DNA from: Sminthopsis crassicaudata
Lineage: Eukaryota
Reading direction: 5' to 3'
NCBI RefSeq assembly: GCF_048593235.1
Contig: NC_133620.1
Location: 440,787,261 to 440,851,260 of the forward strand
Length of the DNA stretch: 64,000 bases
Shown here one piece after another: positions 27,254-51,108 of this stretch. A program made the position numbers and the translations under genes. Below the pieces are notes generated by a model that ran no database searches, was not told where the DNA came from, and saw only the letters and a list, made by a program, of their open reading frames with translations. The stretch's first letter is position 1. The number at the start of each line of letters is the position of its first letter.

Positions 27254-27403
27254 NNNNNNNNNNNNNNNNNNNNNNNNNNNNNNNNNNNNNNNNNNNNNNN
27301 NNNNNNNNNNNNNNNNNNNNNNNNNNNNNNNNNNNNNNNNNNNNNNNNNNNNNNNNNNNNNNNNNNNNNNNNNNNNNNNNNNNNNNNNNNNNNNNNNNNN
27401 NNN
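27254..27403. other. Assembly gap (150 N) in ITGA10 3' UTR, next to a purine-rich simple repeat
   Basis: Run of N preceded by a GA-rich tract. Confidence 0.99.
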
Positions 27404-30600: not shown

Positions 30601-33600
30601 TTGACTGGTCAGCCCGAAGGCCAGAGCCACTGAGTGCTAGAAGCGAAGTTCATTCCCCGGCTTCAAGGCCGGTTTTCTACAGATACCGCTGAAAATGTAA
30701 GTTAGAGGGGCAGCAGGTGCTCAGTGAGCAGAAGGAAATGGTTTCTGGGGAAAGGAACAGCTCCACGAGGACAGCTCCGCAGCTCACCCTTCGGAAGAAG
30801 TCATCGTGGATGAGCCTCAGGAACTGCAGCGAGATCTGGGACCCCCGGGGCAGGCGGCCGAGGCGGCACCGCACCACTTGGCACCAGGAATTACTGCCGT
30901 TCTATGGGAGAAAGGGGTCAGCACCCACGGACAAGAAGGACCTCCTCCTTCTTCCCCCAGCCCCAGTACCCACCAGCAAGGCCCCATCACCTCCCCAGGA
31001 TCTGTTTCTGGGTCTCCCCTCTCCAGCGCTAGGAGCTCGTACCAGATGGCTGACATGTCGCAGGTCCTCGGAGTGCACCGGAGCCGTGGAGGGCTCAGTC
31101 AGGTTCTGCACCATGCAGCTAGCCTGGAAAAAGCGGGCGTACAAGGAGAGGGTTCCCTCAGACCGGACTGCCAACCTCAGAGGACCCTTTCATTACCTCC
31201 CAAACGTGGGACCATCAATTTAGAAGCATAAAGGACCCAAAGAGCCATGCAATCCAATGCTTCCATTTTACAGATGGGGAAGCAGAGCCCCCTAAAGGTG
31301 ACGAGCTAGTGGGAAGGCACAGGGGCTGGGCAGGGTACGAACTCCAAGGCCAGAGTCCTTTCTGCTGTCCCATGCTGCCTCCTTGGCCTAGAAAGGGCAC
31401 TGCTAAGTCCTGGGTCTGATCCAAGATGCCCGCATTAAGGTCACCCGCATCCTTCACAATTCTCTTATCCTGTCAAGTTCATGGGCTGACTTCGGCCAAC
31501 ACATGGGTGCAGGCAGGACCGGGGGTCTGTGGCCTGGATGAAGAAATTCTGGGGAGGGTCCCACAGCCAGAGGGGCTTCAGGAAGGAGGCATCTTCCACT
31601 CACATTGTCAGTAATGATCTGGGACAGGGACAGGAAGTAACTGCCCCCATAGGCCACAGCAGGAAAGAAGGCAGAAATCAAGAGGTCGCTGATGGAATAA
31701 CAACCGAGGTTCTGTACCTGATGGAGTAAATGGGGAGGAGTGAGGGTGCCCAAGGAAGGGTGACTGCCCCCTCTCCCCCCAGCCACAAGATCTGTGGAGG
31801 AACCCAGGAGAATCCCCTCCACCAGCCTTCTCCTTCTCCCCCCCATCTCCCCATCCAGGGCTCCACCCTCTTTGCCCGGCCCCCTTCTGTCTCTCACCCT
31901 GAGAGTGGTTTTGAACTCAGGGCCAGGACCCTCAGGGAGGGCCCCATAGGGGTGAACCTCATATCGGTGCAGCGTGGACTCACTTCAGGGTCACGACACA
32001 GACACCAAACCGGGAAGCACCAGGACGCAGACAGAGGGAGCAGGTGGTCAGCACAGGGACACTGGAGCATGGGAGGCAGGGCTGGGACAGGGACCCAAAG
32101 AGGGGGGCATGTGCCATGCAGAAGGCCCGGGAGCACATGAAGCACTGACACGGGCAAATAGCCAACCCCCCCCAACCCGTTCCAACCCCCTCCAACATGT
32201 CTGGCTGCAGCCTCTCTTGGAGGAGCAAAAAGGGAGAGGAAGGAGAGGGCGGCAGGTTCAGAGTCAAAGGTGCAGGGCTATGAGAGGTTCTGGACAAAGC
32301 GGACCATGGTGGAGGGAGAGTGGTGAAGGTCTGAGGCCCGGGGTCAGGGCTGACCGAAGGGCAGGCCGGGCATCGGGCCATACCTGGAGACCAGGAGCTC
32401 AGGCTCATAGCGGATGTAGGCAGAGGCCTGGACCACATTGTCGTGCAAAGTCTCATTGGACTCCAGACTGTTGCTGCCGGGGCGAGGGGAGAGTCATCAT
32501 CCCTAACTCCTTTGTAGAGAATTCTTCCTCAAGAAGCACTATCCCCCTCCCCCATGTTGTGAAACCCCATCCCCCCCAGGCCAGGATGAGGGGCCTAGAT
32601 GTTTACCTGGTGGCAGTCAGCCTTACAAGAGTTTGGCTTAGGAGAGAAGAGCAGCTGAATTCAAACTCCAAGAGGAAGGTCACCTGGGTTGGGGGAAAAG
32701 GGACCAAAGGCCATAAGGTCCAGGGCCAGCTTTCAGTCAGAGTACTGACCTCTGCACAAGTCTGGAGCATGAGCCAAAGATTCCCTGAGAGCCACAAGGG
32801 TCCCTCAACTCTAGGGGTTCTTAACTTTTTTCATGTCCTCCTGCAGACCCTATCTCACAATCATGCATAAAATAAAGTACAGAGGATTACAAAGGAGGCT
32901 AGAGGTTAATTAGAGATGTAATTTATTTTCTGTACAATTCCAGGTCCCTGGGATCTCTGTTGGAGGGAGTGGGGTCTGTGGATCCTGAATGAAGAAACTG
33001 TCTTAGGTATTCTCTCCCAGAACCCCATGGCCAACCTTCATTCCCCATCTACTGTAAACTTCTATGGGACCAGCTCCCTGGTCCTCTCACTCACGCCAAT
33101 GTTCTCCAATTCCCCCACTCCTAACAATGCCCTATCCAAAAGAAAAGCGTTCTGGGCCTGGAAGCAGGAAAACCTGAGTTCAAATCTAGCTTCAGAAACT
33201 TCCTTTGTGTGTGTGTGAGACCCTGGGCAAGTCACTTACCCTGTTTGCCTCAAGTAGATAACCACTGTCCCTCCTTCATNNNNNNNNNNNNNNNNNNNNN
33301 NNNNNNNNNNNNNNNNNNNNNNNNNNNNNNNNNNNNNNNNNNNNNNNNNNNNNNNNNNNNNNNNNNNNNNNNNNNNNNNNNNNNNNNNNNNNNNNNNNNN
33401 NNNNNNNNNNNNNNNNNNNNNNNNNNNNNNNNNNNCTCAGCACATAGCAGGTGCTTTAACACATGTCCCACTCCCTCCCCCAAAGCCCATGCTTCAGAAG
33501 ACTCCCAGCCTTCTGACTCACCTTGGCCCCGGTCTGGAAGACAGGGTGCCCTATGCTACAGAGCTGGCCATGTGTGGAAGTGGCTGCACACTCTACCTTG

Positions 33601-42600: not shown

Positions 42601-45600
42601 ATTGAAGACTTCTCAGCAATCTAACAAACAGTCCAACTTCTCTTCCCAGCCTTCTTCCCAAGTTTTATTTCTGTTAAGAGTGTCGCCTTAGATCCCATAC
42701 TTAAAGTTGTAGTCTTAGCTTTCTCTCTAACTAGCCCATCATCACATTAGTTCAGAAGGTGTCTGACACTCACCTGCACTAATTATGATCATAATAGCTT
42801 CTAAATTAGTTTCCCAGACTCTCCAATTCCCCCTTCAAAAACCTTCTGGAATATGCCTTCTAAGGCAGAGATCATGCAGGTCATTCCCCTGCTCTAAAAA
42901 AATATTGTTTTAATGATCAAATCAAACTTCTTAGCCTGGCATTCAAGGTCCTCAGCCATCAGGTTCTCACTTACTTTTCACATTATGCCCCTTCAAGTAT
43001 TCTACATTCCAGTCACACTGGACTAAGAGTCCTTGAACTCAGCATGACGTGGCCAAGCCTTGTGCAGCCCCCCCTGGCTAGGATGTGCTTGGAATGCATG
43101 GCTCCTTCCTCATGTTCCCTCCCTGAGATTCTCTAACTCCCTCCATGTCTTGGCTCAGGGGGAGCTTGCTTCCCTGTGGGTTTTCCTTGGAGCCGACAGC
43201 TATCAGGACTTTTCCCCTCCTTCAACACTGGTAGGGGAGATTTCTCCTTCACCAGATTCCCCATCTAGCACATCCCTTCTTTTTGTCCTCTGTGCCCATG
43301 AGCGTAAGCTCTTTGAAAACAGGGATCTTTTGTTTTTATGACTTCCAGTTTACCTTCTATTTGCTTTCCTTTCTTTCCCACACCCATCCCCTATCAAAAA
43401 GCATGACTCAAAAGCATGAGGATGGATACAATTCACCTTACTCTCTCCCAGAATCCTTCCCCACGGTTCCCAGGACCCCCCCTCCCCTCCCTCCATCGCC
43501 CCTCCCCCACCTCACCAAGCCACCGTTATGGCCTGAGCTGTATGGGTTTCTCGCCCTTCTCTTCGGCTCAGGTTCCGGGCAGCTTTCACGACCTCTTCCT
43601 TGGTCCGGAAATCTCCAAGTGACCATTCATGTACGGCAGTCTCCCCATACTGAACCAACCCAACCTGGAGAGGGACAGTTTTGTTGATAGCTCTGTCTAT
43701 ACCTGCCACCCATCTCTGACTCCCACCCTCACCCCTTCTCACCTGTATCTGTTCGGGGTCAATGAACAGCCTCCCCACTAGTCTACGCAAGAAAGTCTGA
43801 ACCTCAGCCCAGGGATAGATGCTGTTAGAGCCATCCAGGACAATGACCACGTCCATGTAGGTGGGGCAGCCTAGATTTTGGAGGCACAGAATGGGGAAGC
43901 TAAAGCACATCAGGGCAAGAGTGTGGGAGCAGTGTCAACAGAAGGGGGCAGTGGCTGAATAAATTGGTACATGAAAGTAATGGGTTATTGTTCTATAAAA
44001 TACGATGAACAGGCTGATGTTAGAAAAGCCGGGAAAGATTTACACAAACTGATGCTGAGAGAAACAAGCAGAACCAGGAATACATTGTATACAATAACAG
44101 CAGGATTGTGAGATGATCAATTAGGAAAGGTTTGGTTCAGTGATCCAAGGAAATTCCAATAAACTTTGGATAGAAAACACCATCTGCACCCAGAGACAGA
44201 GCTATGGACACTGAATGTAAATCAATACCTGCTATGTTTACTATTTTCCTTTTTTCTTCTTCCTTTTTTTTCCCCCTTGGGGTTTTCCCCTTTTGTTCTG
44301 ATATTTCTCTCCCAACATGATTCACAACAAAATGTGCTTTTAAAAAATGAATGTACATGTATAACCAGAAAAAAAAGGAAAAACAATAAAATGAGTTGGG
44401 AAAACCGTGTGGGGGTAGTACAAAGAATATTGGTTGGGGAATAAGAGAATGTGGGCAAAAACCCTAGCTTTGTTTTTTATTAGCTATGTGATCATGAGTA
44501 AGTCTCTTTTCTTTATTTATAAAATGAAAATAATAATAACAACTATTCACAGTGTTATTATGAGGATCAAATAATATTTGGAAAATGCTTAGCACAGTGC
44601 CTGGCACAGAGCAGGGGCTTAAATAGGCAGATAGATGATAAATAAGTAAATGAGAGGTTTCCCTTCTCCGGTCCCCTCCCCACCACTCACGCTGTGCAGT
44701 AGGTGCTAAGCTCCCCCGGGGTCGGAATGAGGCATCCACTTGGGCACAGATCCCAGAACTGTACACAGAAGTACCACAAGCACGAGACCACAGTGGGGCA
44801 CAGGCCTGAGGAAAGAGAAATGGCAGGAACGTGTAAGGGCCCTTTAAATGGGCGGACACAGTGCATCGGGAGATTGAGGCCCAGAAGTAATTTCTGTGGA
44901 CATTAGGACTGCCCTTGGGCGGGATCCTGGCCATATTGAGATAGTTTTGTAATGGGTGACTCTCTCGCTGATTGGCTGTGTGTGTGACCTCACAGGCCCT
45001 ATGTAAGCCCACTGCAGGCAGCAACCGCCCTCTTTAATCTGGCATTCTTCACCCTGGCTTCCCAGCCTGGTGGCCAAGCCAAGATGGATAGCCAAAAGAG
45101 GTAAGGGTTTTGGTAGTGAACACATGGGTCTTCTGACCAGGTGTTCACCAGGGAACCAACAAGTCAGGGCATCAGTTAGGGCATTATGTGAGTAGGTATA
45201 ATAAAGGCTTTTAAGATTACACGTGGCTGTTCTTGAGTGCGCTACCGGTTATTAAGCTATAGATTCAAGAGATTGTGGCCAGAGACCTTAGAAGGCCTCA
45301 GAGGAGGCGAGCCGGGTAGAGCTCACACTGCAGAGGACAGTGGTCAAAGGTACTCTGGTGGGTCTAGGACAGACTAGTAATTGTAACTGCCAGGAGAGCA
45401 CGTACAAATGGCGCTCAACGTGGACGCATCAGGAATTATCAGGTTTTGAAAATATTTAATATTCAGAATTAAGATTCTGAAAGATCCGGTAGAAACGCCA
45501 CTTAAGAGGGAAGACAGAGAAGCAATATGGACCCAGGTAAATCTGGGATCAGGCTCAAGGACACAGCTGAACATAATGCTTATTATATAAAGAGGTTAAA

Positions 45601-48600
45601 GAGCCAGATGGAAGATCTTTTAACAAAGATCACCACTGAAGAACAGCAGGAAGCTTGTAATCAAGCTCCACAAAGGCTATCCCCACACCCAGTAAATAGA
45701 GCTAGGAGAGGGAGCAACCTAGAGCTAATGCGATTGTATGACAGTAGAGAGTATAAAATGCCACAGCAAGAGTTGCTGGAATTGCAGGTTAAACTACAGA
45801 TGGAGATAGAGAAAGAAGAAAAAGCTAGGTTACTACAGATAGAACAGGAAGAGTTCAAACCAGTGGCTGAAACTAAGGAAGGAAATAAAGGAACCACATG
45901 GATTAAAGTTGTAGAAATTCTTCTTAGCGTTTTGTTGGTTTACCTCCTGCATTGTTGTTTTAAGGAATTTATTGATTACTCTTCCATTGAGAAGTTTAGT
46001 TCTTTTTATGTGCAAAGCTCAGGTTTGATTTTAAATCAGCCTTTGGGGAATTTTCCAATTCTTCTTCCCTCTGCCTCACCTTCTTGGGCCAAGGGAGAAG
46101 GGGGAGGAGGAAAAGGAAGGGCGATAATACCATCAGTACTGCCCATTAATCCATTTAAAACTCCTGTGTCTTCATTTCAAAGGACAGGAGTAGGCTTTAT
46201 GCCCCAAGGCAAAAAGGAATTGTGGGGTATTGAGTATAATCAGAAAAGTTTTAAAAATACAGTTCAGTTAATTTCTAAGAAACCTTACAGGGACAAGACC
46301 TTGCAGTTAGAGAGAGTGGAGTTTTATACTTGTAAAACTGCTAGGATTGTCTTTGGAGAGTTGGAACTCCTCTTTTATTACCTCGTGGATTTTCCACTTC
46401 CACAGGTGAGCTTGATTTCCCAACCCCCTACGGGTACTTATAAAACAGTGTTTATGTCTAGAATGGGTTGGAAAATTGTTGTTTTAATCACTAGAATAAA
46501 TAGACAGTGTGTGATCTTTGACCCAGGAGGAAAAGTAATATCAGATTTATTGATTCACACTCCTGGAGTACAATTCGGTATCAGAAACTCAAACTTTGAT
46601 TTTTAGGCAAAAGAATTCAGGGATATAGCCAGAGTGTTCTAGTAAAGTCATTACTGCACAGACTATCCCCAAGATCTCTTCTAAACAAGAGAAGGGAATT
46701 TTGGGATATGTGATTGCTTACAATTTTTAAATTTTGATTTTACATTTTTAAACATTTTTGATTTTACATCTTCAAAGTATTTTGATTTTACATTTTTAAT
46801 CTATTTCGGTTTTACACTTTTAAATTATTTTGGTTTTACATTTTTAAATTCTTTGCATTTTACCTTAGCAATGCACTTCGGGCATACACAGAAAGTGCAG
46901 CTAAGTGACAGACTGACTTTTGTCTGACTTGTTAATCTTTTTGACAACAACTTTGTTTCCACTGTGATGTGGAAAGGCCTGGATGGCATTTGGAAAGGCC
47001 CAAGTTGGGCCCCAGGGACATTCCTTCCTAGGTGCAGATCCAGCAGCAGAGTTCATCCCCACCAGAGACATTTGTAACCTGGGGATCCAAGAGAAGGACC
47101 AGACAACAGTCCAGAGAGACCAGCCAGATGTCCGCAGCCCTTCAGACGCTGATGGCAGCGATGCCCCTCCTGACCGTGACACCAGAGACAGCAGACACGG
47201 TTCCAGTGTTGCAGCTGAGATGGACTGTTTTGGGTGATACACGATATAAAGACTGTAAATGGACAATGGGCCTGCTTGCTTCTCCCGTGGCCACTTACCA
47301 TATGGTGGCCTGGGGAGAGGCTTTGCCCTATGCTTTCTATTGAAGGACTATGCTTTTAAATTAGTGGGTGAAAAACCAACACACCCACCTGCCATTGTTA
47401 TTGAGACAATGTTACTGGACATGACTTTGCTTATGTGCACCTGTGAAACTAGAATTGTTCTAGAATTGTGAAAAGTGCAATAGAGAATTGTGATAAACTA
47501 GAATTGTTCTAGGATTGTGAAAAAGTGCAATTGAGAATTGTGATAAACTAGAATTGTTCTAGGATTGTGACAAGTGCAATTGAGAATTGTGATAAGCTAG
47601 AATTGTTCTAGAATTGTGACAAGTGCAATTGAGAATTGTGATAAGCTAGAATTGTTCTAGGAGTGTGAAAAGTGCAACAGAAAATTGTAAGAAACTAGAA
47701 TTGGTCTAGAACTGTGATAAATGTAACTAGAATTGTGACAACCTACCTACTGATATTTGTTAACTAGAATTGTGATGTTTTACCTTGTTGACTTCCCACC
47801 TCAGTGTTGACATCCTACCTCATTGGCATCCAACCTCTTTGGCTTATTATCTCGAGTATGACTTTGATGAATGGGTTGAACACTTGGGCCACTGTTGAGC
47901 CTGGTTCTCATTGTCATACTTCTGTTTACTGATTTGCTGCTTTGTACCTCCTTGGGCATAACACTGTCATCTCATGGATCAAGTGAACTATAGCTGATGG
48001 TAAAAGTTTAGCTTGGTGAGATGTGCGGTTCCCGCAAAACAAGAGAAAGGGAATTGTAAGGGCCCTTTAAATGGGCGGACACAGTGCATCGGGAGATTGA
48101 GGCCCAGAAGTAATTTCTGTGGACATTAGGACTGCCCTTGGGCGGGATCCTGGCCATATTGAGATAGTTTTGTAATGGGTGACTCTCTCGCTGATTGGCT
48201 GTGTGTGTGACCTCACAGGCCCTATGTAAGCCCACTGCAGGCAGCAACCGCCCTCTTTAATCTGGCATTCTTCACCCTGGCTTCCCAGCCTGGTGGCCAA
48301 GCCAAGATGGATAGCCAAAAGAGGTAAGGGTTTTGGTAGTGAACACATGGGTCTTCTGACCAGGTGTTCACCAGGGAACCAACAAGTCAGGGCATCAGTT
48401 AGGGCATTATGTGAGTAGGTATAATAAAGGCTTTTAAGATTACACGTGGCTGTTCTTGAGTGCGCTACCGGTTATTAAGCTATAGATTCAAGAGATTGTG
48501 GCCAGAGACCTTAGAAGGCCTCAGAGGAGGCGAGCCGGGTAGAGCTCACACTGCAGAGGACAGTGGTCAAAGGTACTCTGGTGGGTCTAGGACAGACTAG

Positions 48601-51108
48601 TAATTGTAACTGCCAGGAGAGCACGTACAGGAACGTCATTCCCAGATCCCAGGGCCGGATCTCATTCCCCCTTCTCGAGCTGTTTCCCACTCCCTACCTC
48701 CCCCATAGGGTCTAAACACCATCCATTTGGTCCTTCCCCACTCTCCGTGCCATTAACTTTCTGCACTGCTCCCTCAGTGGACTCCTAGAATGGATTCCCC
48801 ATCGTTAACTTCCACAATGCCCCTCATTCCCACCTCACCATAAAGCCCCCATCCACATCAGTTTTCAGCAGTGACATCCCAAGATGCATGTTCACAGCTG
48901 GACTCGAAGAGTTTCCCAGTGGATAGTCACCTGGAAGTGACAGGGAAGTTGGTGAACACAGGTTTGGGGTCGGGAGTGGAGAGGGAAGGAATATTTAGGA
49001 AGTCATGGGAAGCAATCAAATGTTATTGGGAAGCGGGGAGTTTGAGGAATAAGAGGTCAGGGTCAAAGAGTGGAGAAGAAGGCTGAAAGGGAGTGGCCTC
49101 TGCTTACCCAGGTGGCCCTTGGCACAGGAGGCATTAGGCCGCTCCTCCACAGGACAGAGATACACATCTCCTCTCCTATCTCCGGAAGGTCCATCCCAAG
49201 GGGCACCCACCAACATCCTGTGAGACCAAGGTTGTGCATGAGCATGGCTTCCCGGAGCATAACCCTAAAGACAAGCTGGTCCCAAAGCCAGAACTTCAGT
49301 TTGTGATCACCCCAGTTTATTCTCCAAGATCCCAACTGTCTCATTCCTTCTGAAAGTAACTACATGGCGATTACTCTCCTATTATCTATGGCTCGTGGGG
49401 GATAAATAATATTGGCCCAACCTAAAGTCTATCCTTCTGTTTCCCTACAGGCTTCTCCTTAACCAGCCCCACCCCAGCGCCAGCCCTTTCTCCTTTCTTC
49501 CTTCTCATTCGGGTTCCCTTTGACCATCATGATACCCCGAGTTGTCCCAGGCTTCCCTCACCATCCACGTCCTCCCCCCACGTGCTGCAAGACACTGTAT
49601 CCGAACTCGGCCTCCGGTGGCCCATGAAACAGGCGAGGATGACTATCATCCAAGTTGAAGGAGAGGCAGAAACCTGGGGGAAGGAGGGATGGAGGGAGAG
49701 AAGATCAGTCACGAGGTCAAGGGCTTAGGGGAAGCCACAGGAGGGCTTGGCTAAGTGAAGAGACCTCTGGCCAGGACATGCTGGCCCGAGCCGCTGGCCC
49801 TCTCCTTGTCTTGTCTCTAGCAGCATTTCCATCTGCGCCTGCTGGCCCAAGGGTGTCTTCTTCTACCTTGTCTCCATCCAGATGTCCTGTTCATCCTGTC
49901 TGTGGCTCTTAGCCACAATGACATGCACAGCTGTGAATTCATTCCCGCCCCCGAAATCTCTTTCACAGAATCAATCTAAAGGGTCGGGTTACTCAGCCCC
50001 CCTTTTCCTCCCTGCCCTCACCCAACCTGGGAGGCTCAAACAAAAGTAGGGGAATGGCAGCTTTCTGTAACATCAGAAAAATTCCCCAGTCCCTGTGGGG
50101 TCCAGGGGTTAGACAGGAGCCTGAAAAGGACAGGACACTGAAAGCTGTCTCTTACAAGTACCCCCTGTTTCTCCATCTCCCCATGTCAGTGTGTCTCATG
50201 CAGGCACACACAGATTCCTGTGTCTTCGGCCTCAGCCCCGGAAACCTCAGGATCAATTACCGGGGTGGGGCAGCCTGCCCACACACAAACTTCTCTCTGC
50301 CCCCACCACAGAGGTCCCAAAGCTTCACCACCCTTCTGCCTTCCCAGCACAGCGACATCCCACTCCCTAACTAGGCCCCTGTTCACTTCCTGAATAATTT
50401 AGTCCCCTCCCAGAGACCCCACATCATGTCCTAGCTGGTCCTCTCCTTCCTAGCCCAAGCTCTCTCCAGACTCAGAACGGGTATTTTGGGAAACATAGAT
50501 TATAGGGGAAAGCTAAGATCCCCTTAAACATGGCCAAACCACCCCCGCCTTTTAGGGTTCCCTCCCTACTTCCCAGACCATCCCTTCCCCCTCCTCCCTT
50601 CCTAACAAATGCCTCTCCAGAACAAAGGAGTGTCTCATATGTCTTCAGACCCCCCTGGACACTAGGAAGTCAATAGGTGGGGTGGGACTGCATGTGGTCA
50701 TTGGTCAAATATTCTTAGGATGCCAGCCACTCTGGCCGAGGGGGACCCTGAAGAAAAGGGGCCATGTGGAGCATTCTGGGTGCCACTTTCCAGAAGTCTA
50801 GGCACCAATTCCAGGTAACTAAGCAAAAGCTTCCACCAGCACCACAGGAAAATTCTCCTACTATCATCCTGGGAGAGGAGGGAATAATCTGTAATATGGA
50901 TTCAAAGTCACACTTTTCAGAGCCCTGTCCTTAGGGCTCCCAGCAGCAGGGCGTCTCCTCCCCCCACAAAGGACATTCTTACCCCTAAGGTCCCAGCCCC
51001 CAGACATCCCACACACCTGCCTCCCCACCAAGCCCCAAATGGTTAACCTCCCTCACCTGCCAGGAGCAACACGGGGAGAGGGAGGAGAGGGCTGAGGGAG
51101 AGCTCCAT
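27675..51108 (-). CDS. ITGA10: Integrin alpha-10 (collagen-binding I-domain integrin), 30 exons, 1165 aa, intact
   Basis: Exons (minus): 51108-51057, 49673-49562, 49217-49108, 48930-48839, 44805-44691, 43870-43743, 43664-43516, 39465-39315, 39076-38911, 38584-38511, 38240-38096, 37324-37176, 36988-36845, 36727-36527, 36098-35968, 35735-35569, 35492-35350, 35193-35080, 34825-34740, 34016-33875, 33614-33522, 32683-32607, 32473-32384, 31982-31898, 31717-31604, 31123-31043, 30901-30788, 28603-28508, 28235-28122, 27737-27675. Total 3498 nt, all GT-AG. Signal peptide, FNLD start, MIDAS DGSNS, FG-GAP repeats, TM and GFFARK tail. Confidence 0.98.
33280..33435. other. Assembly gap (156 N) inside a MIR-like SINE in ITGA10 intron 21
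   Basis: Run of N flanked by SINE-like sequence. Confidence 0.99.
37515..37864 (+). mobile_element. WSINE1-type SINE split by a hAT MITE
   Basis: Head ggagcagctaggtggtgtagt at 37515 continues after the MITE as gatcagccctgaagtcaggaggacctgaattc...CORE...A-tail. Confidence 0.8.
37544..37750 (-). mobile_element. 207-bp hAT/Charlie MITE resembling OC1 (OposCharlie1) non-autonomous elements
   Basis: 16-bp TIRs CAGGGGTTCTCAAACT / CAGTGGTCCTCAAACT; perfect 8-bp TSD GTCTAGTG (37536-37543, 37751-37758). Minus-strand start cagtggtcctcaaactttttaaatagggggccaattcactgtccctcagac matches the recalled OC1 MITE left end. Confidence 0.85.
39831..39993 (+). mobile_element. Young WSINE1-type SINE with long poly-A and TSD
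   Basis: Intact head and CORE, pure A-tail of about 23 nt, 13-bp TSD AAGTGCTGAACAA (39818-39830, 39994-40006). Confidence 0.9.
41110..41245 (-). mobile_element. WSINE1-type SINE
   Basis: Reverse complement of head (...ccacctagctgcccc) and CORE, with (TAT)n tail upstream. Confidence 0.85.
43960..44370 (+). mobile_element. Degenerate L1 3' fragment
   Basis: gttattgttctataaaatacgatgaacagg...aactgatgctgag...gcagaaccagga homologous to 24340-24440. Confidence 0.75.
44832..45406 (+). repeat. 5' LTR (575 bp)
   Basis: TGTAAG...CGTACA; GC box (GGGCGG near 44917), inverted CCAAT 44971-44975, TATA-like TATGTAA near 45000, AATAAA 45200-45205. Confidence 0.96.
45409..45426 (+). promoter_or_regulatory. 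Primer binding site, tRNA-Lys(CUU)-like
   Basis: TGGCGCTCAACGTGGACG, 2 nt after the LTR; matches the Lys1,2 PBS TGGCGCCCAACGTGGGGC at 14 of the first 15 nt. Confidence 0.85.
45527..46606 (+). CDS. Unknown 359-aa predicted single-pass membrane protein carried by the LTR element in the gag position
   Basis: Uninterrupted ATG-to-TAG ORF of 1080 nt; strong Kozak (aatATGG); 100 nt after the PBS. Heptad-like segments at about aa 18-42 and 80-110; hydrophobic stretch aa 125-145 ending in CC. No recognisable retroviral motif. Confidence 0.75.
   Translation: MDPGKSGIRLKDTAEHNAYYIKRLKSQMEDLLTKITTEEQQEACNQAPQRLSPHPVNRARRGSNLELMRLYDSREYKMPQQELLELQVKLQMEIEKEEKARLLQIEQEEFKPVAETKEGNKGTTWIKVVEILLSVLLVYLLHCCFKEFIDYSSIEKFSSFYVQSSGLILNQPLGNFPILLPSASPSWAKGEGGGGKGRAIIPSVLPINPFKTPVSSFQRTGVGFMPQGKKELWGIEYNQKSFKNTVQLISKKPYRDKTLQLERVEFYTCKTARIVFGELELLFYYLVDFPLPQVSLISQPPTGTYKTVFMSRMGWKIVVLITRINRQCVIFDPGGKVISDLLIHTPGVQFGIRNSNFDF
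46720..46863. repeat. 24-bp T-rich tandem array, about 6 copies
   Basis: G(A/G)TTTTACA anchors at 46736, 46760, 46784, 46808, 46832, 46856 (exact 24-bp period). Confidence 0.9.
46964..47075 (+). pseudogene. Frameshifted remnant of a betaretrovirus-like integrase C-terminal domain
   Basis: VMWKGLDGIWKGP (46964-47002), then W-A-P-G and, in the next frame, HSFLGADPAAEFIPTRDI; resembles recalled MPMV VKWKDPLDNTWHGP...WGRG...DAARWLPER and HERV-K WIPTRHL. Confidence 0.6.
47449..47775. repeat. 49-bp tandem array (5 full units plus 3 degenerate) with internal hairpin
   Basis: Units start at 47449, 47498, 47548, 47597, 47646, 47695, 47727, 47764; each full unit opens with CTAGAA-TTG-TTCTAG. Confidence 0.92.
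48036..48053 (+). promoter_or_regulatory. Polypurine tract
   Basis: AAAACAAGAGAAAGGGAA immediately before the 3' LTR. Confidence 0.85.
48055..48629 (+). repeat. 3' LTR (575 bp)
   Basis: Same length as the 5' LTR; no difference found by eye; identical 93-aa ORF translations in both copies. Confidence 0.96.

Follow-up and report, generated by a model that had tools for sequence, protein, structure and literature searches.

A Complete LTR Element with Identical Ends

The 64,000-nucleotide stretch of the fat-tailed dunnart (Sminthopsis crassicaudata) genome analyzed here, hereafter the window (contig NC_133620.1, forward-strand positions 440,787,261 to 440,851,260, with all coordinates below counted from its first letter), carries a complete long terminal repeat (LTR) element at positions 44832-48629. 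Over its 3,798 bp the element presents, on the + strand, the terminal and priming signals of a retrovirus, together with an intact internal open reading frame (ORF) of 359 codons including the stop (45527-46606). Its 5′ LTR (44832-45406) and 3′ LTR (48055-48629) span 575 bp each, start with TG and end with CA, and have the same sequence throughout (100% identity, with 0 mismatches and 0 gaps), while 6-bp copies of the target-site duplication (TSD) GGAACG abut the element on the left (44826-44831) and on the right (48630-48635). Because the two LTRs are identical, the insertion is recent: zero differences over the 575-bp pair correspond to an age below ~1 million years (95% bound), under an assumed rate of 2.5e-9 substitutions per site per year. 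This agrees with the recent integration proposed in an original prediction that had been made for this locus from the DNA letters.

The 5′ LTR is followed by a leader (45407-45526) that reaches up to the ORF and is the presumed packaging region. It includes, 2 bases past the LTR, an 18-nt primer-binding site (PBS) of the tRNA-Lys1,2 type (45409-45426). The PBS of the window copy agrees at 14 of 18 positions with the tRNA-Lys1,2 PBS string quoted in PMC8775094 and PMC1084362, a reference that is not itself a marsupial tRNA gene, and its dunnart relatives agree with the same string at 16 of 18 positions, the first 15 bases being perfect. For a direct check of the PBS, no tRNA genes were found in the window or in the further dunnart loci fetched for comparison (see below). 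At the other end, an 18-nt polypurine tract (PPT; 48036-48053) stops 1 base short of the 3′ LTR. Within the LTR, TATAATAAA at 45197-45205 serves as the sole TATA-like motif and also as the sole AATAAA, an overlap that would be compatible with a very short R region. The structural elements named in the original prediction, that is the LTRs, the Lys-type PBS, the PPT, and the 6-bp TSD, were all recovered where it had placed them.

Between the ORF stop and the PPT, the internal region is arranged as a second purine-rich tract, a 24-bp tandem array, ~550 bp of unique sequence, a 49-bp tandem array, and a further ~300 bp. The 24-bp array (46718-46863) comprises ~6 copies of its unit. The 49-bp array (47446-47745; 6.1 copies) is built of palindromic units, each of which features the perfect 6-3-6 palindrome CTAGAA-TTG-TTCTAG, with a fold z-score of -2.8. 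The array occupies a position at which an RNA export element is often found in simple retroviruses; Rfam searches of the window, and of the element at a lax threshold, returned only chance-level matches and none for the array. The second purine-rich tract (46683-46698), just past the ORF stop, nearly repeats the sequence of the true PPT. It could be the trace of an old junction at which the ORF once lay directly upstream of an LTR or, alternatively, an internal plus-strand priming site.

No Recognizable Retroviral Genes

Searches with Pfam of every + strand piece of at least 25 aa in the element detected no gag, pro, reverse transcriptase (RT), or env domain, as the original prediction had anticipated, and no RNase H or integrase domain in any piece either. 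The same prediction had described one remaining scrap of integrase, the one-frame piece at 46928-47074 (+), which our analysis does not confirm. The piece aligns to two C-terminal integrase chains of mouse mammary tumor virus (MMTV) in the PDB over 14-15 residues at E = 1.4 and 1.8, amid other chance-level matches; it has no Pfam match, and a longer one-frame version of it, present in a relative at dunnart locus L008, has no PDB, Pfam, or protein match. The element keeps only the cis requirements of reverse transcription and integration: LTRs, a Lys1,2-type PBS, a leader, and a PPT.

An Intact ORF without Relatives

The start codon of the ORF is in a strong context (A at -3, G at +4), and the presumed leader ahead of it has only one upstream ATG, which opens a 13-codon ORF. 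Its frame holds 0 stops versus 17-35 in each of the five other frames. From base composition, the chance of an ORF this long is P ~1e-11, and 0 of 2000 simulated sequences reach its length, in keeping with the earlier claim that so long a frame would be unlikely to arise by chance. As it is open by far more than chance allows, the ORF must at one time have been a genuine coding sequence.

The product has a sole hydrophobic segment, at residues 126-144 (encoded by 45902-45958), where the Kyte-Doolittle mean reaches 2.15; elsewhere in the product this mean does not exceed 1.27. It has five cysteines and no N-glycosylation sequons (N-X-S/T), and the charges flanking the hydrophobic segment leave its membrane topology undecidable. 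The N-terminal 110 residues are predicted to be helical at low confidence, the C-terminal ~215 aa show no confident fold, and AlphaFold2 returned predicted local distance difference test (pLDDT) scores of 33.9 for the whole protein modeled with an alignment and of 32.0 for the C-terminal 214 aa alone. The product is predicted to pass the membrane once and to have a helical N-terminal part.

Homology searches place this protein in a family of its own. At thresholds relaxed to E up to 1, Pfam returned nothing for the ORF except a membrane-helix noise match, and a Pfam search of the other five frames of the region was likewise empty; a PDB sequence search with the ORF had no match, and no relatives were seen in the viral and metagenome contigs scanned. 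A word-indexed search of 5.8 billion protein clusters retrieved as sole relatives one S. crassicaudata cluster, which consists of eight RefSeq entries labeled "uncharacterized protein LOC..." that are 85-96% identical to the window ORF. A HMMER profile search of all 1.84 billion representative proteins returned this same cluster and one SRCR-repeat protein (E = 2.4e-4). We rejected the latter as a relative: its score is summed over five near-identical repeats, its BLASTP E value is ~1, and the SRCR cysteines are absent from the ORF product. There is likewise no LTR-free relative in the protein collection, and no LTR-free or intron-bearing paralogue in the fetched loci. The Pfam and profile searches therefore uphold the original prediction in that the product has no known relatives and is not recognizable by hidden Markov models as Gag or Env. 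Its description as an unknown protein holds in so far as there are no relatives outside the family, and fails in so far as RefSeq already lists the ORFs as uncharacterized S. crassicaudata proteins.

A Family of Young Copies in the Dunnart Genome

The annotated proteins led to at least nine further ORF-bearing copies, which occupy eight loci spread over six S. crassicaudata chromosome records. This route biases the sample to open frames, and the loci were fetched to an extent of ~90 kb in all. The further copies have a common layout of 3.7-4.1 kb and are 93-97% identical to the window copy at the DNA level. Seven dunnart copies still have both LTRs, and a matching 6-bp duplication frames all of them; the duplications are distinct from locus to locus, with the tandem pair at locus L001 lying within a common one, and across the seven loci checked, the window included, every duplication is different. 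The LTR pairs differ by 0-1 mismatches in six of these seven two-LTR copies and by 12 in the remaining one. Two other copies are incomplete, one without its 5′ LTR and one with a cut 5′ LTR. The window copy is ~2.5% diverged from the dunnart copies, as those are among themselves, and a distance tree places it within their group, which assigns the window to this species or a very close relative. With no replication genes and many separate integrations behind it, the family must, we infer, borrow its replication proteins.

Several of the loci have features of their own. At L001:1852-9320 (CM109184.1) the order is LTR-internal-LTR-internal-LTR within a single 6-bp duplication, GGGACC, with no difference between the two internal parts, an arrangement that looks like the product expected from unequal exchange between LTRs. 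Together with L007 on the same record (~258.59-258.97 Mb), this locus contributes three ORF copies from two independent integrations within ~375 kb. In L008 the identity to the window copy drops to 84-87% over the 3′ internal half (6331-7690), against ~96% over the ORF half; this copy either combines two subfamilies as a mosaic or is a recombinant. Finally, a 223-bp segment just past the ORF stop (L007:6114-6336, also in L004 and L008) is missing from the window copy as well as from the rest, and it has no protein match.

Sequence Variation among ORF Copies

The ORF is full length (358-360 codons) in 6 of 10 copies and shortened in the other 4, three of which have a common frameshift and one a different frameshift. 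The three copies with the common frameshift are framed by three different duplications and do not group in the tree. Since the same shortened ORF is found at three separate integrations, the shortened form must itself have propagated or have been passed on by recombination.

Substitutions were evaluated over a set of eight copies; a nine-copy set with L008 was discarded, as the frameshifted tail of that copy adds noise. Variable sites fall at codon positions 1, 2, and 3 in the numbers 28, 29, and 24, and the variable sites comprise 52 nonsynonymous and 20 synonymous ones, a nonsynonymous share that does not differ from the neutral expectation of 0.742 under the same mutation spectrum (p = 0.39). 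The mean pairwise ratio of nonsynonymous to synonymous substitution rates (dN/dS) is 0.57 by NG86 (bootstrap 0.34-1.00) and 0.90 by LWL85 (0.51-1.60), a method that allows for transitions. Nucleotide divergence of the ORF, at 0.026, is like that of the non-coding parts (0.017-0.028), and a neutral ORF of such age would be free of new stops with P = 0.46, counting substitutions only. Strong purifying selection on the ORF is excluded by these results, which leave room for weak or frame-only constraint.

The original prediction had held that the ORF appears to be maintained, and neither the even spread over codon positions, nor the dN/dS values of 0.57-0.90, nor the presence of a shortened variant in three integrations supports this. 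It had also named, as an outcome that would speak against it, copies with disrupted ORFs and a dN/dS near 1; this outcome is seen in part, with 4 of 10 ORFs shortened and 6 of 10 still full length.

Origin of the Element and of Its ORF

In light of these results, we propose that the window element probably belongs to a young, multi-copy, non-autonomous family of class II (betaretrovirus-like) endogenous retroviruses (ERVs) of dasyurids, and that its ORF is a passenger kept open mainly by the youth of the family. Both the 6-bp duplication and the tRNA-Lys-type PBS are marks of class II, and the cis signals thus agree in type with the betaretrovirus-like character assigned in the original prediction. 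The element further shows what is expected of a derivative mobilized in trans, namely LTRs, PBS, and PPT without gag-pro-pol, and many independent integrations of the defective form; the non-autonomous satellite put forward earlier is borne out to the extent that only cis signals are kept and integration has recurred, its dependence on a helper following by inference. Active or recently active betaretrovirus-like clades, some of them with identical LTRs, have been reported in the dunnart (PMC11334065).

According to this model, RNA made from the 5′ LTR would be packaged, via the leader, by Gag that a related autonomous ERV supplies; a tRNA-Lys1,2 primer would start its reverse transcription, and the helper's integrase would carry out the insertion with a 6-bp duplication. 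The element would then be a parasite of a parasite, as ETn is on MusD and the bovine ERVK D-type on the C-type. The ORF lies within a swapped-in central segment, at the position where gag would start, and the full-length RNA could serve as its messenger. The ORF would have been a real coding sequence in the founder of the family and would now be a passenger, still open as the family is only ~2.5% diverged and not through any need for its protein in spread.

Several observations weigh against this proposal. Neither the window nor the ~90 kb of fetched loci contain an autonomous partner that shares the LTR, PBS, or leader, and the 575-bp LTR lies outside the 281-486 bp range of LTR lengths of the eight reported dasyurid clades (PMC11334065). 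The class II assignment is drawn from the 6-bp duplication, the PBS type, and the LTR ends, there being no RT for placement in a tree. As to the passenger status of the ORF, its indels are scarce (3 versus 10.3 expected, p = 0.002), with 2 of the 3 in-frame, and the nonsynonymous share is lower in variants common to copies (21:12) than in private ones (31:8; p = 0.19). The two together hint at some constraint on the frame or the protein, and both are open to ascertainment bias from the protein-based finding of copies; by the same bias toward open frames, the 6 of 10 full-length ORFs do not give the intact share among all copies.

In a reading that we consider unlikely, in line with the original prediction, the ORF is a working accessory membrane-protein gene, selected as it aids the persistence of the element or of its helper. 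Its possible roles would include action on host immunity, in the manner of the MMTV superantigen, or interference with the helper or with host restriction. Not only the depleted and mostly in-frame indels and the lower nonsynonymous share of common variants, but also a 359-codon frame beyond chance, a strong start context behind a single short upstream ORF, full-length ORFs in 6 of 10 copies, an NG86 dN/dS of 0.57 (with an upper bound of 1.00), and RefSeq gene models on the ORFs, two of them spliced, are all consistent with such a gene. Set against these are the missing third-position excess (28/29/24), a dN/dS of ~0.9 once transitions are allowed for, the spread of the shortened variant to three sites, the lack of any Pfam match, MMTV_SAg or other, the lack of N-glycosylation sequons in the product, AlphaFold2 pLDDT values of 32-34, and the fact that the copies were ascertained through their ORFs. 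A more specific form of this idea, which strikes us as quite improbable, is that of a spreading satellite with a new single-pass membrane-protein gene of its own, without relatives, born or captured in an ERV and acting on the host or the helper. Under it, with the same low probability, the weak signs of a conserved frame would be genuine, and diversifying pressure would explain the flat dN/dS.

Two further readings would derive the ORF from known kinds of genes. Capture of a host gene fragment, as in acutely transforming retroviruses, would account for the layout, since an LTR, a leader, a foreign ORF in place of gag, a remnant, a PPT, and an LTR are the order seen in a transducing, helper-dependent retrovirus. 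However, only copies of the element match among the 5.8 billion clusters, which include the S. crassicaudata RefSeq proteins, and the fetched loci are without an intron-bearing or LTR-free paralogue, so that we see little prospect of such an origin. Derivation from gag or env, as a strongly diverged remnant in the form of either a matrix-like helical N terminus or a long Env signal peptide with part of the surface unit, appears just as improbable. The ORF does begin at the gag position, 100 nt past the end of the PBS, its N-terminal 110 residues are predicted to be helical and to lead into a hydrophobic stretch, and marsupial betaretroviral Gag and Env proteins have been reported to be just 26-29% identical to known ones (PMC11334065). 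Conversely, no Pfam match appears even at E up to 1, the profile search of 1.84 billion representatives yields the family itself and one repeat-inflated chance match, and the five other frames match nothing. The probable status of the ORF remains that of a passenger in a satellite mobilized in trans.

Relation to Known Defective Retroviruses

The original prediction had regarded the layout of the element as without described precedent among marsupial ERVs. As a class, defective ERVs with a swapped center that outnumber their helpers are known from mouse (ETn/MusD), cattle (bovine ERVK), and koala (recKoRV) (PMC10924933), and that claim is therefore not upheld. What is new is an undescribed family, what is already known is the class of trans-dependent defective ERVs to which it would belong, and the unusual feature is the intact orphan ORF.

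A close parallel in design is provided by the class II ETn/MusD pair of the mouse, in which LTRs, PBS, and PPT are kept, the coding center is replaced, and the young, multi-copy elements are copied in trans (PMC10924933). The dunnart element differs in that its center holds an intact 359-codon frame, and the ETn system in that its helper is known. To our knowledge, the swapped center of ETn has no long ORF. In bovine ERVK[2-1-LTR], also of class II, defective D-type copies dominate new insertions by means of the competent C-type, an arrangement described as "parasite-of-parasite" (PMC10924933). In contrast to the D-type, which measures 6.8 kb and has broken gag, pro, pol, and env, the dunnart element measures 3.8 kb and has no recognizable retroviral gene and an orphan ORF. 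The koala recKoRV, with the ends of KoRV and the center of PhER, shares with it the marsupial host, the swapped center, and a spread that needs an intact relative (cited in PMC10924933); it is gammaretroviral and the source of its center is known, whereas the signals of the dunnart element are of class II.

Within the same host family, the class II clades MEBrv 1-5 likewise include members with identical LTRs and are reported to have been recently active in the dunnart (Harding et al. 2024, PMC11334065). By description, which is the only basis of our comparison, they differ in their length of 7.3-9.5 kb, their possession of gag and pol, and their LTRs of 373-469 bp; as candidates for the helper they are the obvious ones. 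The screen of Harding et al., the one systematic survey of dasyurid ERVs, kept only ERVs with similarity to gag, pol, or env (PMC11334065), and it is because of this requirement that it would have missed the family presented here.

The format of the ORF invites comparison with the MMTV superantigen (Sag), an extra betaretroviral ORF of ~320-360 aa with a single internal hydrophobic segment, which is situated in the U3 part of the LTR and encodes a glycosylated type II membrane protein. The resemblance is one of format only: there is no match to Pfam MMTV_SAg, the ORF is internal (45527-46606) and not in the LTR, and its product has no sequons.

The fat-tailed dunnart is becoming a laboratory marsupial, and in this species a retroelement family whose LTRs are identical is likely to give rise to insertional differences between animals and to chimeric transcripts. 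It also adds a marsupial class II case to the pattern of defective copies outrunning their helper seen in mouse, cattle, and koala, and its orphan ORF offers a clean, small case for the origin of retroviral extra genes, with function not supported by the present data.

Gene Models and Genomic Surroundings

Two of the RefSeq models (L006:5001-9961 and L008:5001-6810) use a splice donor within the ORF (AGGTGA, window 46404) that they join to downstream acceptors. The acceptor in L006 lies past the 3′ LTR, in flanking host DNA, and the resulting model is chimeric. One locus is represented by three isoform accessions of the same protein. Together, the splicing and the isoform entries suggest that the models have transcript support.

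Elsewhere in the window, a block with a GC content of 0.67 at 2001-4000 includes a 603-codon minus-strand ORF (2111-3922) with only a weak coiled-coil match in Pfam; this region may be a large host exon or just a CpG island. Runs of N occupy 27254-27403 and 33280-33435. A second block, with a GC content of 0.70 (56000-58000), overlaps the first coding exon of a type II gonadotropin-releasing hormone (GnRH) receptor (57603-58140, +; Pfam 7tm_1), whose best match is a Monodelphis protein at 94%. The protein collection yielded no dasyurid entry for this exon, which by itself marks the host as a marsupial other than Monodelphis and nothing narrower. The LTR element lies ~9 kb upstream of this exon, in the same orientation.

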